A stretch of 64,000 bases of DNA, taken from sequence record LC819009.1; one strand, 5' to 3'. The position numbers and the translations under genes were made by a program. Numbering within the stretch: the stretch's first letter is position 1; each line of letters starts with the position of its first letter. This document shows, piece after piece, positions 31,110 through 36,176 of this stretch. Under the pieces are notes generated by a model. The model had not been told where the DNA came from, did not search any database, and saw only the letters and a list, made by a program, of their open reading frames with translations.

Positions 31110-31991
31110 ATGGCAACGGAACAACAAGGCGGTACGCAAGACAACACTGGCGTCGATCAGGAAGCTCTGAAGGCAGCAGCTGCCGATCAAGCCGCTCAAC
31201 AACAAGAGCAGCAAGACGCCGCAGGTGACGCAGCAAAGGACACGCCTCCGGCAGACGACGCTGCTGCAAAGCAAGCTGCTGCTGACGCTCAGGCCGCCGC
31301 CGATGCTCAAGCTGCACAAGCCGCTGCAGATGCAGCTGCCGCCGCCAAGGCTCAGCCCGTGACCGCACAAGTCCGCAAGACGATCCCCGCTCCGGCTGCT
31401 CAGCAAACGGGTGCGAAGGATGCTTCGACGACCACGGCAACGACGCCTGCCGCCGCTGTCGTCACCAAGCAAGTCGCCGCTGCAACGGTCACTGACACGA
31501 CCACCAAGGCTCCGGCCAGCGATCGTGATCTGCCCGAAGTCGTCGCTGCGATGAAGGTCGCGAAAGCGCAGACGCAATCGGCTCTGTACCAGGTCATCCA
31601 GTACGCGATCGACATGCATCCGGGCAAGCGCGTGGAACTGCCGGCGATCGAACAGGCTCAGATCAACCTGCGCTCGAACCTGTTCACGATCCTGTCGGCT
31701 GAAGACGTGAACTTCAAGGTCGTGTACCAGGCACTGCTCGCAATCGTCAAGGCACATCGTCAGAACTGCTTCGCGATCACGGCACGCAACCGCGGCCTGA
31801 ACACGGTCAGCCTGGCAGCGCTCGACAACAAGGGCATGCGTTTCCTGACGAAGATCGTTGATCTGCTGGTGCTGACTGCCGGCATGAACGACGTCGAAAA
31901 CGTCAAGAAGCAGTTCGACTTCTCGAAGCTGGCTGAATGGTGCCCGAACGTGCGCATTCAGCAAAACCTGACGTCGTACTACTCGGCGTAA
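31110..31991 (+). CDS. Hypothetical protein with Ala/Gln/Thr low-complexity N-terminal half and globular C-terminal domain
   Basis: 293 aa; GGAG RBS; strong codon bias. Confidence 0.75.
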   Translation: MATEQQGGTQDNTGVDQEALKAAAADQAAQQQEQQDAAGDAAKDTPPADDAAAKQAAADAQAAADAQAAQAAADAAAAAKAQPVTAQVRKTIPAPAAQQTGAKDASTTTATTPAAAVVTKQVAAATVTDTTTKAPASDRDLPEVVAAMKVAKAQTQSALYQVIQYAIDMHPGKRVELPAIEQAQINLRSNLFTILSAEDVNFKVVYQALLAIVKAHRQNCFAITARNRGLNTVSLAALDNKGMRFLTKIVDLLVLTAGMNDVENVKKQFDFSKLAEWCPNVRIQQNLTSYYSA

Positions 31992-32056: not shown

Positions 32057-32917
32057 TTAGGCGTAATTCATCTTGCGCGCTTTACGATTCTGCTTCTTGA
32101 TACGAGCAGAACGCTGGCGACGATTCTTCTGATGCTCCTGGTTATCCAGGCGTGCTTGTGTTGCGTAGTTCTCACGCTCCACATGCTTCACAGCACCAGC
32201 GAAGTATTGGTCGATGCCACGCTCGAAGAACTCATGGCGAACACTATCCCAGCTGGTCAGGTCTTCATCTTCCCGACACATGTCGAACGGAACAGCGCAG
32301 GACATGACGACGCTTTGCGAGATGGGACGACCAAAGAATTCCAGGATGGCAATGGCCATGCATTCGCAACGATCAGCATAGTGCAAATGCTGCCGATGAC
32401 GATACAGAACGCCATTCAGATTCTTGATGCGGAAGTGATGTTCCACGAACTGCATCAGATCCATGCCGATGGCCTGCAAGCCTTTGCGACCAGAGTGCTC
32501 GATGATTGCCCGCATACCGTGCATCATGATGACTGCGTAGTAGTTGGGCATGTACTGGCCGATGTAGTGCGGCTTCGTGCAAGCACCTTCGTAAGCGATC
32601 ATTTCATCTTCGATCTGATCGAGTACGCCCTTGGTGAAACGAACCAGAGAGAAGTTGTGGATCTTGCTTTGTTCGACGAACTTCTTCAGGCTGTCCTTGA
32701 ACGCGTCGTACTTCAACTGCTGTGCGCTACGTTCTCGGCTGCTCGCTAGAGCAGCTGCGTGAAGCAAGCGTTTGAGTTCACGCTTGTCTTTACGCGACAT
32801 TTTCTTTTCTTTCTTTGATCTCTTCTCGGCGATCACCCACTTGAACGCGATGACAACGATCAAGATAAGCAGACCCACCAACCCCACAGCGACGGCATTC
32901 GGATTATACATTTTCAA
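32057..32917 (-). CDS. Membrane-anchored hypothetical protein
   Basis: N-terminal hydrophobic AVAVGLVGLLILIVVIAFKWVIA followed by a basic stretch. Confidence 0.7.
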   Translation of the reverse strand: MKMYNPNAVAVGLVGLLILIVVIAFKWVIAEKRSKKEKKMSRKDKRELKRLLHAAALASSRERSAQQLKYDAFKDSLKKFVEQSKIHNFSLVRFTKGVLDQIEDEMIAYEGACTKPHYIGQYMPNYYAVIMMHGMRAIIEHSGRKGLQAIGMDLMQFVEHHFRIKNLNGVLYRHRQHLHYADRCECMAIAILEFFGRPISQSVVMSCAVPFDMCREDEDLTSWDSVRHEFFERGIDQYFAGAVKHVERENYATQARLDNQEHQKNRRQRSARIKKQNRKARKMNYA

Positions 32918-32934: not shown

Positions 32935-33339
32935 TCATTCAGGAATGTAGGAAAGAACTACGTACGAAATACCAGGTTCGAGACCGATCTTGTCACCCAG
33001 AATCGGAATCAGGCTAATACCGGCCAAAGTCGACAGATAAAGCGCAGTCAACCCAGCCTTGTCGTCTTCGAAAGTGCATTCACAAGTGAAAGCGCCATCG
33101 TCTTCGACAATTTTGCCAGCCACAATGCACTGGCTAAAATCCGTTTTGGAGGGATTCTTCTCCCGGATGTACTGCTGGAGGGCATAGGCCAAGCGAGCCG
33201 GTCTGGGACCCTCGTTGAAGGCCGCAAAGTGCTTCCTCCACTCATCTACGGTGGTCTCGTACTCCGGCGGCAGAAAAATGTCCACGACCTGGGAAGTACG
33301 AGACCGGATAGTCTTTTGAACTAACCGGTCAAGACTCAT
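32935..33339 (-). CDS. Hypothetical protein
   Basis: 134 aa; GAGGAG RBS; starts 1 nt after the ACP-like stop. Confidence 0.7.
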   Translation of the reverse strand: MSLDRLVQKTIRSRTSQVVDIFLPPEYETTVDEWRKHFAAFNEGPRPARLAYALQQYIREKNPSKTDFSQCIVAGKIVEDDGAFTCECTFEDDKAGLTALYLSTLAGISLIPILGDKIGLEPGISYVVLSYIPE

Positions 33340-33340
33340 A

Positions 33341-33616
33341 TTACTCCTCGTTCAGATGCTTAATTACCTTGTCAAAGACGTCCTGCCAGGTAGCGAACGG
33401 GCCATCGAGAAATCCGATTTCCAATTCATCTTCCAGTTCAGACATGATGTCCATGTGATCCAGCGAATCCAGATCCCCGCTCTGGAAAGGCAACGCCAGG
33501 AACTCACGGAACTCCGTACTGTTCTCGACCGCGGTCTTGCGAACCGTTTTCGTGTCGTACGACGATACTACTTGGACGAGCACTCGACGTGCTTTCTGTG
33601 CTTTGGCCTCAGCCAT
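33341..33616 (-). CDS. Acyl carrier protein-like protein
   Basis: GDLDSLDHMDIMSELEDELEI aligns with ACP GADSLDTVELVMALEEEFD; Ser51 in the DSL motif; ATWQDVFDKV aligns with TTVQAAIDYI; AGGGG RBS. Confidence 0.75.
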   Translation of the reverse strand: MAEAKAQKARRVLVQVVSSYDTKTVRKTAVENSTEFREFLALPFQSGDLDSLDHMDIMSELEDELEIGFLDGPFATWQDVFDKVIKHLNEE

Positions 33617-33671
33617 TTTAAAAACCCCTGCTTGTTATTACTGTTACTGGTTTCGGTCGAAAACCAAATAA

Positions 33672-33869
33672 TCAGTCTCGCTTTATATCGTACAAATCCG
33701 TCAGTTCCGGATGGTAAACACGCAACTGAATCATGTCCCGGTTGTTCGGTACTTCGTTGAACTCGAAGAACATGTTGAACGCTTGACCTTTCTGATCCAC
33801 TACCTGGCAGAGGATGTGTCGGTCCTGTGGCAATTTATCCATCAAAGCTTTAATGTCTACCGGGGTCAT
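33672..33869 (-). CDS. Small hypothetical protein (65 aa)
   Basis: GAGG RBS before MTPVDIK. Confidence 0.6.
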   Translation of the reverse strand: MTPVDIKALMDKLPQDRHILCQVVDQKGQAFNMFFEFNEVPNNRDMIQLRVYHPELTDLYDIKRD

Positions 33870-33905
33870 AAAAACCTCAAAAAATAAGTAGGCAGCAAAA
33901 AGGGC

Positions 33906-33935
33906 GGGACAGAGTGGCCGAAGCCACTCCATCCC
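33906..33935 (-). terminator. Intrinsic terminator at the 3' end of the structured non-coding region
   Basis: GGGATGGAGTGGC-TTCG-GCCACTCTGTCCC followed by GCCCTTTT. Confidence 0.7.
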
Positions 33936-34380
33936 ATGCCTAAGATGAAACTGAACTTACATCCCTAGGTCGTCGCATCACCACAAGGAAATGACGAGTG
34001 ACGACTAAGGGCTATAAGCTTTGCAGCGTTTCCCAACGGATGCGCTACCTATAACTGGTCCCGAAAAGACCCCTTACAATCGATGCGGGCTTAATACACA
34101 CGAAGGCCAAACGACGTCCCCGCAAGCGCGAACGCGCGCGCCAGCGATTTACGTCAGGCATCACTAAGTCCTTAAAGGGAAACTCATATCGGCGGCACTA
34201 AGAGGCGGCCATGAGTCGTGATCTTCGCGCAGCTTAGAGCAGTAGTATCGAGACTCTGCCTTCACCACATACGACGTGTGTATTTCGCGGGCCTTTCACC
34301 CGAGCCAGGATATATCGCGCAATCGCACCATCCCGACCTCTGCCTCGAACAGATCTTCAGAAGCCATGTTGTTAAAGAAC
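33936..34380 (-). ncRNA. Candidate large structured non-coding RNA of unknown class
   Basis: No credible ORF; many nested helices with GNRA/UUCG loops; 10-bp long-range complement 34093-34102/34275-34284; terminator at the 3' end. Confidence 0.55.
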
Positions 34381-34430: not shown

Positions 34431-35729
34431 TTACGGTTGCAGCGTGTCGGTTTGATCAGCAGCTGCTGCGCCGTCATCGTCAGCCTTCACGTCGGTAGCC
34501 GCCGGCGTTTGGACTTCTGCTTGAACAGCAGCATCTGCGACTTCAGCGGTCGGGGCAACGTCGGCGGGAGCAGCGACTTGTTCAGCCGTCTGTTCCACTG
34601 CGGGCGTTTCCACGGCCGGAACTTCTGCTTGCGCTTGTGCAGCGTCGGTTTCCACCGGCGCGGCTTCTTGCGCTGCGTCAGCAGCTTGTTCCACCGGAGC
34701 AGCGTCGACAGGTGCGCCAGCCAGTGCTGCAGCCGTTTCCGGATCTGCATTCACTTCGGGCGTTTGTGCCAGAGCTTCGGGCGAGTGATCGACTTCTTGC
34801 GAGGTCAGATCCGCCGGAGCAGCTGCTTGTTCCACAGCGGGAGCTTCAGCTTGACCAGCATCGGCTGCCGGTGCTTCCACTTGTGCTGCGGCATCGACGG
34901 CCGGAGCCGTTTCTACCGGTGCTGCTTGCTCGCCAGCGGCGGGGTCGACTTCAGGGGCAGCTTCTTGAGCCACGCCTTCGTCGGCTACGCCGGCCGGTTG
35001 AGCTTCGACAGCAGCAGTGTCGGTCGTTTCAGCGGCAGCTTGAGCCGGAACTTCGGCTTGTGCATCTGCTGCATTCGCGTCGACTTGCGGAGCTGCGTCA
35101 GCCGGGGTTTCAGCTTGCGCTTCGCCTGCGGCCGGGTCCACTTCTGCTGCTGCGGGTGCTTCCGGAACTGCCGGGGTTTCCGGTTGTGCCGGTGCATCTG
35201 CGGGCTGTTCCACTGCCGGTGCAGCTTGTTCAGCCGTACCTGCATCCGTGCCCGCTGCCGGATCTTGTTCGACGGCCGGAGCATCGCCCGTCGGTTGTTC
35301 TTGTTCAGCTGCCGATGCGTCAGCTGCGGGAGCAGCATCCGTACCAGCGTTGTCTACCAGCACGTCGCCGGTGGGTTGTGCTTCTGCGGGAGCCGCGTCA
35401 GCAGGTGCCGGGTCTTGAGCTTGATCACCAGCGACCGGAGCCGCGTCTTGCGTTTGGTCGCCAGTTGCGATCTGGTTGTCCAGATCAGCTGCTGCTGCGC
35501 CAGCGGCTGCGGCAGCTGCCGTACCGTTGTCGCCCAGACCGAGCGCTTCGTTCGTGGTGTCGCCGAGCGGTGCGTCGCCGCTTGCCGGCGGGACGATCGG
35601 ATGGTCTTCCTTCTTCTTGTGGAAGATGCCGACGATACGTTCGACCACGTGTTCGGGCAGGGAGGCCAGGGCTTCGATCGCCAGGATTTCAGTCTTCAGT
35701 TCATCGAGAACTTTGTGGATGATGCTCAC
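34431..35729 (-). CDS. Acidic Ala/Pro/Gln-rich intrinsically disordered protein
   Basis: 432 aa; AAGGA RBS; about 40-aa helical head, then degenerate repeats (EVDPAAGE, PAVEQ, APVET). Confidence 0.8.
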   Translation of the reverse strand: MSIIHKVLDELKTEILAIEALASLPEHVVERIVGIFHKKKEDHPIVPPASGDAPLGDTTNEALGLGDNGTAAAAAAGAAAADLDNQIATGDQTQDAAPVAGDQAQDPAPADAAPAEAQPTGDVLVDNAGTDAAPAADASAAEQEQPTGDAPAVEQDPAAGTDAGTAEQAAPAVEQPADAPAQPETPAVPEAPAAAEVDPAAGEAQAETPADAAPQVDANAADAQAEVPAQAAAETTDTAAVEAQPAGVADEGVAQEAAPEVDPAAGEQAAPVETAPAVDAAAQVEAPAADAGQAEAPAVEQAAAPADLTSQEVDHSPEALAQTPEVNADPETAAALAGAPVDAAPVEQAADAAQEAAPVETDAAQAQAEVPAVETPAVEQTAEQVAAPADVAPTAEVADAAVQAEVQTPAATDVKADDDGAAAADQTDTLQP

Positions 35730-35813: not shown

Positions 35814-36176
35814 TCAGTGCCAGATGATGGTCACGAAAGGTCCTGCAACGGCGAAGGCGAAAAGCAGTTTGCACGCAATATGCAACGCTTGATCGCCCAT
35901 CGCACTGATGATCTTGTTGACACGCAGCATGTCGATTACCCAATGCCAGGCGAACTCGCAAAATGCAATCGTGAATGCTGCTTTCGGATTGAACAACCAG
36001 ACGACTCCACCTGCAGCTGCACCCTGAATCAGGGCATGCATCGTCAGGCCATACCACCACGGGAAGCCAGGCACCAACTTGTTCTTGATGTCGGACAGGA
36101 ATTGTCCTTGACCAGGAAAGTCGAAGAATGCGTGAACTGCCAGCAGGAGACCGAGGACTGCAAGAAACGTCACCAT
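35814..36176 (-). CDS. DUF3307-like membrane protein
   Basis: HAFFDFPGQ, HALI, HWVID and DQALH motifs in hydrophobic helices. Confidence 0.75.
   Translation of the reverse strand: MVTFLAVLGLLLAVHAFFDFPGQGQFLSDIKNKLVPGFPWWYGLTMHALIQGAAAGGVVWLFNPKAAFTIAFCEFAWHWVIDMLRVNKIISAMGDQALHIACKLLFAFAVAGPFVTIIWH

Follow-up and report, generated by a model that had tools for sequence, protein, structure and literature searches.

Acyl carrier proteins (ACPs) are among the most connected proteins of bacteria. They dock onto basic patches of their partner proteins via an acidic stripe on helix II; helix III, which helps to form the acyl pocket, also belongs to the usual client interface, whereas helix I lies outside of it. 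To our knowledge, the serine that carries the phosphopantetheine arm is essentially invariant in carrier proteins. Mitochondrial ACPs (NDUFAB1/ACPM/SDAP) are established small acidic structural subunits of complex I and other assemblies, and they bind LYR-motif partners via the acyl-phosphopantetheine arm and hence require the serine. Small ACP-fold proteins are also present in phages (PHROG 5934, Caulobacter phage Seuss, Eneladusvirus and Flavobacterium jumbo phages), and their proposed roles in the envelope or in lipid metabolism are speculation only in the literature (PMC7760394, PMC13573597).

The locus investigated here encodes a protein of this kind. The window, i.e. the whole analysed stretch of 64,000 nucleotides, is 100% identical to the genome of Ralstonia phage FLC4-5C (LC819009.1, 225.6 kb) and 80-97% identical to those of FLC4-4C, FLC6, FLC8, RSL2, RsoM3USA, RSF1 and Burkholderia phage SURPRISE13. 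FLC4-5C is a phiKZ-like jumbo phage of the RSL2/RSF1 group, whose hosts are the plant pathogens Ralstonia and Burkholderia. Split multisubunit RNA polymerases are documented for FLC4-5C and its relatives among the phiKZ-related jumbo phages (PMC5468394), and homologues of the nuclear shell and of PhuZ are present in the RSL2/RSF1 group according to the description of SURPRISE13 (PMC11898562). The gene in question, gp211, is annotated as “hypothetical protein” in the GenBank entry of FLC4-5C. The ACP-likeness of a homologue is already on record in one GenBank entry, that of SURPRISE13, where it is labelled “acyl carrier protein-like superfamily protein”, and two metagenomic homologues have been named “acyl carrier protein” by JGI. 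A paper characterising the gp211 family was not found in the literature searched, and the publications on FLC6, RP12/RP31 and SURPRISE13 do not mention it. The features of the gene are as follows:

33341..33616, minus strand: gp211, a 91-aa protein with ACP fold, PHROG 31629 (open reading frame, PHROG match, AlphaFold2 model, structural and profile matches)
33557..33613, minus strand: helix I (residues 2-20), a basic segment and the one with the strongest conservation in the family (DSSP of the model, column entropy)
33464..33466, minus strand: codon of Ser51 (TCG), the canonical phosphopantetheine position (sequence; not conserved in the family)
33422..33466, minus strand: helix II (residues 51-65), which corresponds to the “recognition helix” of ACPs and carries D53, D56, E60 and E62, capped by D50 (DSSP, column tallies)
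33347..33388, minus strand: helix IV, residues 77-90, beginning at Trp77 (DSSP, tally of W77)

The acidic 91-aa protein that the original prediction had proposed at this position is the product of a real gene. Its reading frame starts with ATG, is preceded by an AGGGG-type ribosome-binding site and matches PHROG 31629 from end to end (E 2.2e-59, residues 1-91 versus profile positions 1-91). The protein has a pI of 4.56 and a net charge of -9. This charge is unevenly distributed, the N-terminal third being basic (+4.5) and the rest strongly acidic (-14). About 27 distinct family members (sequence clusters) were recovered, all of them from RSL2/RSF1-like phages and metagenomic relatives, and nearly all relatives have a length of exactly 91 aa (two have 93 aa), even at an identity of 34%. 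Tblastn with gp211 returned matches in 11 RSL2-like phage records only. A dN/dS ratio of 0.16-0.30 among the cultured phages documents that gp211 is under purifying selection. No second ACP-like gene or domain was found in the FLC4-5C genome, where gp211 is the sole member of its family. Two long proteins (P0025, P0026) that matched residues 42-86 in an exhaustive search were considered as tandem-ACP synthases and rejected; they are acidic repeat proteins without a PP-binding domain and their matches are thus compositional.

The AlphaFold2 model of gp211 (pLDDT 86.9, pTM 0.78) contains helices at residues 2-20, 27-30, 33-41, 51-65 and 77-90 (DSSP). It has none between residues 66 and 76, which form a loop at the position of ACP helix III, and it therefore bears out the earlier alignment with ACP helices I, II and IV and a shortened helix III region; the third helix is in fact missing. 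A wide VIA-align search against 48,161 PDB chains retrieved acyl or peptidyl carrier proteins or domains as all of the best 50 matches (Z 9.6-6.9; rmsd 2.1-3.2 Å over 68-83 residues), and the best one superimposes with an rmsd of 2.2 Å over 79 residues (Z 9.6). The top PDB match obtained with Foldseek is a holo-ACP (probability 0.87) and the best meaningful matches in AFDB and BFVD are ACPs or carrier proteins, the agreement being weaker than that of VIA-align. Structure prediction, one of the checks proposed for the ACP assignment, thus recovered the helical bundle of carrier proteins.

The second proposed check, a PP-binding HMM, gave a divided result. The single sequence of gp211 does not match PF00550 even at E<=10, its scores with the NCBIfam ACP models (12.8-16 bits) are far from the cut-offs of 66-71, and the protein lies below the cut-off of every curated ACP model (PF00550, TIGR00517). 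The single-sequence matches to the “acyl carrier protein” family PHROG 5934 (E 0.0086) and to a mitochondrial ACP in the PDB (E 0.26) are weak or marginal. What did reach the PF00550 gathering cut-off is a single family member, P0019 (21.9 versus 20.8 bits). The profile of 23 family members obtained 110 matches at E<=1 against the PDB sequences (best E 9e-4), and the 60 matches listed are all ACPs or the D-alanyl carrier protein DltC; helix II and the following loop align with solved ACPs without a gap. The ACP-likeness of gp211 clearly exceeds chance, and both the fold and the profile identify the protein as a homologue of ACP. A profile search for a bridge to a particular ACP subfamily returned only members of the gp211 family itself.

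A comparison with the described systems reveals both shared and deviating traits. With the bacterial type II ACP (AcpP, PF00550) gp211 shares the fold, the place of D-S-L at the start of helix II, the acidity of this helix, an I-P-D-like loop motif (in the family consensus) and, approximately, the overall size and the acidic character. It differs from AcpP by about 15 extra residues before the serine, two additional short helices in loop 1 and the lack of helix III; moreover, the serine is replaced in 41% of the family, and neither a cognate phosphopantetheinyl transferase (PPTase) nor an acyl enzyme was found in the FLC4-5C genome. The best sequence matches of the family profile in the PDB are mitochondrial ACPs (7b0n_T, 6gcs_O/Q, 9iho_U), but in contrast to these the gp211 family does not need the serine, and no LYR-like partner was identified. 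The other phage ACP-like proteins are likewise small and share the fold, with a weak fold match for that of Caulobacter phage Seuss (TM 0.47-0.52), but PHROG 31629, the family of gp211, is closed and distinct from theirs.

Position 51 and the conserved surface of gp211

Ser51 is read directly from its codon, is preceded by the invariant D50 and represents the first residue of helix II in the model, exactly as in ACP. The presence of D-S-L in gp211 was hence correctly noted, but its interpretation as an intact functional serine is misleading. Among 27 distinct members, i.e. the 23 of the alignment (S13, A4, T2 and one each of F, P, Q and L) and four further ones (three Ser, one Val), position 51 is occupied by serine in 16, alanine in four, threonine in two and phenylalanine, proline, glutamine, leucine and valine in one each; accordingly, 11 of 27 members (41%) lack the serine. 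With an entropy of 2.0 bits the column ranks 68th of 91 in conservation, below the median position. The maximum-likelihood tree requires about eight to nine changes at this site, no fewer than with shuffled labels, which indicates that the replacements are many and independent. The columns around position 51 anchor the family alignment without gaps, and none of the serine-less variants, in the alignment or among the extra members, has a substitute serine adjoining the invariant aspartate.

The serine-less variants are located on contigs of 220, 119 and 87 kb, and wherever the DNA was read (RSF1 and the loci L003, L004 and L007) they retain the gp211 operon. The cultured phage RSF1 has an alanine at position 51 (D-L-D-A-L-D); a paper that cites earlier work ascribes to it a faster infection and a larger burst than to RSL2. 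FLC4-5C and most of its close relatives keep D-S-L together with the residues for recognition by AcpS, and the holo form might thus matter in this lineage. Given the near-invariance of the carrier serine elsewhere, a variable position 51 is unexpected for an attachment site. Its free replacement indicates that the conserved function of the gp211 family is independent of the cofactor. Since the serine is variable within one orthologous family and has not been lost throughout, the indifference of selection to this residue is seen directly, and the family provides unusually direct evolutionary evidence of a re-purposed carrier fold.

The conserved positions lie elsewhere. In the alignment of 23 members D50, E60, E62 and W77 are invariant, D53 and I57 are each present in 22, and position 56 is aspartate in 21 and glutamate in two. 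D50, D53, D56 and E60 line up as an acidic stripe along helix II, next to which E62 occupies the neighbouring face. The five residues align with D35, D38, E41, A45 and E47 of E. coli ACP, which form the “recognition helix” bound by ACP clients. The constancy of D50 and D53 could also be structural (helix capping) rather than due to docking. The most conserved segment of all comprises residues 1-21, i.e. helix I and the S-S-Y-D turn, with a mean entropy of 0.70 bits versus 1.32 overall, and the most variable one is the loop 67-76 that replaces helix III (2.0 bits). Selection has kept the recognition helix and helix I intact, with no regard to the cofactor serine.

The gp212-gp209 unit and the search for acyl enzymes

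On the minus strand gp211 is part of a unit of four genes (gp212, gp211, gp210 and gp209), whose remaining elements are listed in the order of transcription:

33905..33936, minus strand: terminator-like hairpin, 14 pairs followed by a T run (its span includes the start annotated for gp212)
33672..33869, minus strand: gp212, small acidic protein just upstream of gp211, probably 65 aa (PHROG 35443, lengths of homologues)
32935..33339, minus strand: gp210, 134 aa (spacing, ribosome-binding site, co-occurrence, synteny)
32057..32917, minus strand: gp209, 286 aa, third gene after gp211 and gp210 in the unit (sequence, charge, PHROG 36615 of unknown function)

The hairpin probably terminates an upstream non-coding transcript and marks the beginning of the unit. 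The annotated reading frame of gp212 comprises 86 aa (33672-33932, minus strand), but PHROG 35443 covers residues 22-86 only and the counterparts in RSF1 and in metagenomes have 64 aa; the real start is therefore probably Met22 (33869). No informative match was found for gp212.

The ATG of gp210 is located one base past the stop of gp211 and the motif GAGGAG (33344-33349) lies within the last gp211 codons, an arrangement from which gp210 is predicted to be translationally coupled to gp211. The gene is present in exactly the 11 phage records that contain gp211. The order gp211-gp210-gp209 is kept in metagenomic relatives down to an identity of 34-37% of the ACP-like protein, with characteristic lengths of 64 aa, 91 aa, 118-139 aa and about 300 aa for the four genes and with a gene for 280-321 aa at the position of gp209. 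Synteny is, however, kept over the whole neighbourhood in RSL2-like phages, and the linkage of gp211 to gp210 and gp209 is for this reason only suggestive.

Due to its similar size and its position beside the ACP-like gene, gp210 was examined as a diverged PPTase of the AcpS type. This candidate was rejected: gp210 has no match in Pfam, the PDB sequences or PADLOC, and its model (pLDDT 80) is unlike AcpS. It shows a weak but repeated resemblance to the prohead/assemblin protease fold, namely to T4 gp21 (Z 6.3), to herpesvirus proteases and to prohead proteases of the HK97 type, and “prohead serine protease” clusters in AFDB reach a probability of up to 0.97 with a TM below 0.5. The invariant columns of gp210 contain neither a histidine nor an internal serine. 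As judged from the model, gp210 may be an inactive, shortened relative of this fold, or the resemblance may have arisen by chance.

The third protein, gp209, is strongly basic (pI 9.7, net charge +19 versus -9 for gp211). An N-terminal hydrophobic anchor (about residues 8-28) is followed by a basic Lys/Arg-rich stretch, and the C-terminal tail is highly basic as well; according to the positive-inside rule the stretch after the anchor places the bulk of gp209 in the cytoplasm. The protein had no match in Pfam, PDB or ESM Atlas, and the ESM Atlas look-up for gp210 likewise gave no usable match. A His/Cys-rich segment of gp209 (YRHRQHLHYADRCEC) is noted here as a side observation.

The lack of PPTase and fatty-acid synthesis genes that had been stated for the window extends to the complete 225.6-kb genome of FLC4-5C for the six Pfam families searched. 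A six-frame search with PF01648 (PPTase), PF00550 (PP-binding), PF00501 (AMP-binding), PF00109 (ketoacyl synthase), PF01553 (acyltransferase) and PF03061 (thioesterase) yielded no match, whereas control genomes did match. The neighbours gp210 and gp209 also showed no match to an acyl-enzyme family. A hit of PF22624 (PPTase N-domain) at genome positions 905-1135 scored 13.7 bits, contains four internal stop codons and was dismissed as noise.

Role of gp211

We consider it probable that gp211 is a diverged ACP homologue that has turned into a “pseudo-ACP”, which keeps the fold and the acidic stripe of helix II, can dispense with the phosphopantetheine arm and would, as a small acidic subunit, mediate docking or act as an adaptor. 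One basic surface would be bound by helix II, and the highly conserved basic helix I would provide another interface that is specific to this family. Among the possible partners, the presumably co-transcribed and translationally coupled gp210 and the membrane-anchored, strongly basic gp209 are the most likely, and the three proteins may assemble into a complex of the phage at the inner membrane. A role within the phage is favoured by the coupling and co-distribution of gp210 and by the location of the best-conserved element, helix I, outside the usual ACP-client interface. Alternatively, the target of gp211 may be a host enzyme that is a client of ACP. In phages with Ser51 such as FLC4-5C the host AcpS may still modify this residue, and the modification could be incidental or modulatory.

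The original prediction offered two functions, a redirection of acyl flux, for example to infection membranes, and an ACP decoy. The former corresponds to a true holo-ACP that is phosphopantetheinylated at Ser51 by the host AcpS and carries acyl chains made or used by the host for a purpose of the phage such as membrane or lipid remodelling, with the serine-less relatives being degenerate or re-purposed. The intact D-S-L in the first turn of helix II, the equivalents of ACP D35, D38 and E41 (D50, D53 and D56), serine as the commonest residue at position 51 (16/27) and a membrane-anchored protein in the same operon agree with such a carrier. Yet 11 of 27 members lack the serine but do not differ from the others in length or in the invariant residues, nor in the operon wherever the DNA was read; one of them is RSF1, a viable cultured phage with Ala51 that is described as faster and more productive than RSL2 in a paper citing earlier work. 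Furthermore, helix III and with it the acyl pocket element is missing in the model, the curated ACP models are not reached, and no PPTase, ligase, synthase, acyltransferase or thioesterase of the phage was found among the families searched in the FLC4-5C genome. The redirection of acyl flux depends on the very serine that is so often replaced, and no enzyme for loading or using the carrier was found; consequently, we disfavour it as the function conserved across the family, and we regard the holo-ACP as distinctly unlikely. A carrier role, if real in the lineage with Ser51, would be a lineage-specific extra and not the core function of the family.

The decoy is a sub-case of the pseudo-ACP reading with a host instead of a phage partner: gp211 would compete with AcpP for clients (AcpS, enzymes of fatty-acid and lipid A synthesis, SpoT) via helix II without delivering a substrate and would thereby shut down or rewire lipid synthesis or stress signalling. 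It has to be taken seriously, because the acidic stripe of helix II is exactly what the ACP clients of the host read, position for position; the dispensable serine is as expected of a pure binder, and the missing acyl enzymes among the families searched in the FLC4-5C genome are in line with it. Conservation is nevertheless strongest in helix I with its SSYD turn (residues 1-21, entropy 0.70), outside the usual client interface, and lowest in the loop that has taken the place of helix III, a part of that interface, and the tight coupling of gp211 with gp210 speaks for a partner from the phage. All in all, the decoy is plausible and a serious alternative, though we hold it to be unlikely. A wider scenario, in which gp211 is a serine-independent ACP mimic that captures or silences host ACP clients (lipid A and fatty-acid synthesis, AcpS, SpoT) at the inner membrane together with gp209 and gp210 and thus couples lipid metabolism and stress signalling of the host to the early membrane-bound, nucleus-forming replication, appears unlikely. 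If true, a virus would have made an inhibitor or adaptor out of ACP itself.

Even less probable is a mere scaffold function of the fold without any relation to ACP docking, for example as a nucleic-acid mimic, an anti-defence protein or a virion or assembly factor acting with the protease-like gp210. The strong acidity of gp211, the weak likeness of the gp210 model to prohead proteases and the detection of an unrelated ACP in virions of Erwinia jumbo phages (PMC7760394) can be cited for it. This very unlikely explanation conflicts with the pattern of conservation in gp211, whose conserved residues coincide exactly with those of the recognition helix in ACPs; there was no PADLOC or anti-defence match, and gp210 lacks conserved Ser and His and has weak matches only (TM below 0.5, Z 6.3).

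The pseudo-ACP reading has implications beyond this locus. A viral copy of ACP that keeps the docking helix and for which the cofactor is dispensable would lend itself naturally to probing the interfaces between ACP and its clients, and nucleus-forming jumbo phages could have in gp211 a new factor for host takeover or for assembly. With respect to annotation, the label “acyl carrier protein” in the gp211 family is no evidence of a phage lipid metabolism.

Flanking genes and RNA-library contigs

Contigs from RNA libraries (root metatranscriptomes) align with portions of gp211 and gp210 (33443-33657, 33268-33438 and 33164-33380). They are no proof of transcription because of their low depth, their source in relatives of about 90-99% identity and possible DNA carry-over.

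The genes on either side of the unit show several peculiarities. Downstream of gp207, which encodes a piece of the RNA polymerase beta' subunit, gp208 (31110-31991, plus strand; 293 aa) starts with a long low-complexity region rich in Ala, Gln and Asp, and RNA-library contigs of related phages have indels in this region (skips at 31136-31374 and 31402-31520). On the opposite side gp213 (34431-35729, minus strand) encodes a very acidic protein of 432 aa without a family match, nearly all of which is low-complexity sequence composed of seven residue types (Ala, Glu, Pro, Asp, Gln, Thr, Val); its length differs widely between contigs of related phages, and the skips (34488-34679, 34960-35300) indicate that it evolves by expansion and contraction. 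Upstream of the gp212-gp209 unit a DUF3307 membrane protein (PHROG 2470) is encoded at 35814-36176 on the minus strand, and its gene occupies the equivalent relative position in SURPRISE13 and in one distant metagenomic relative.
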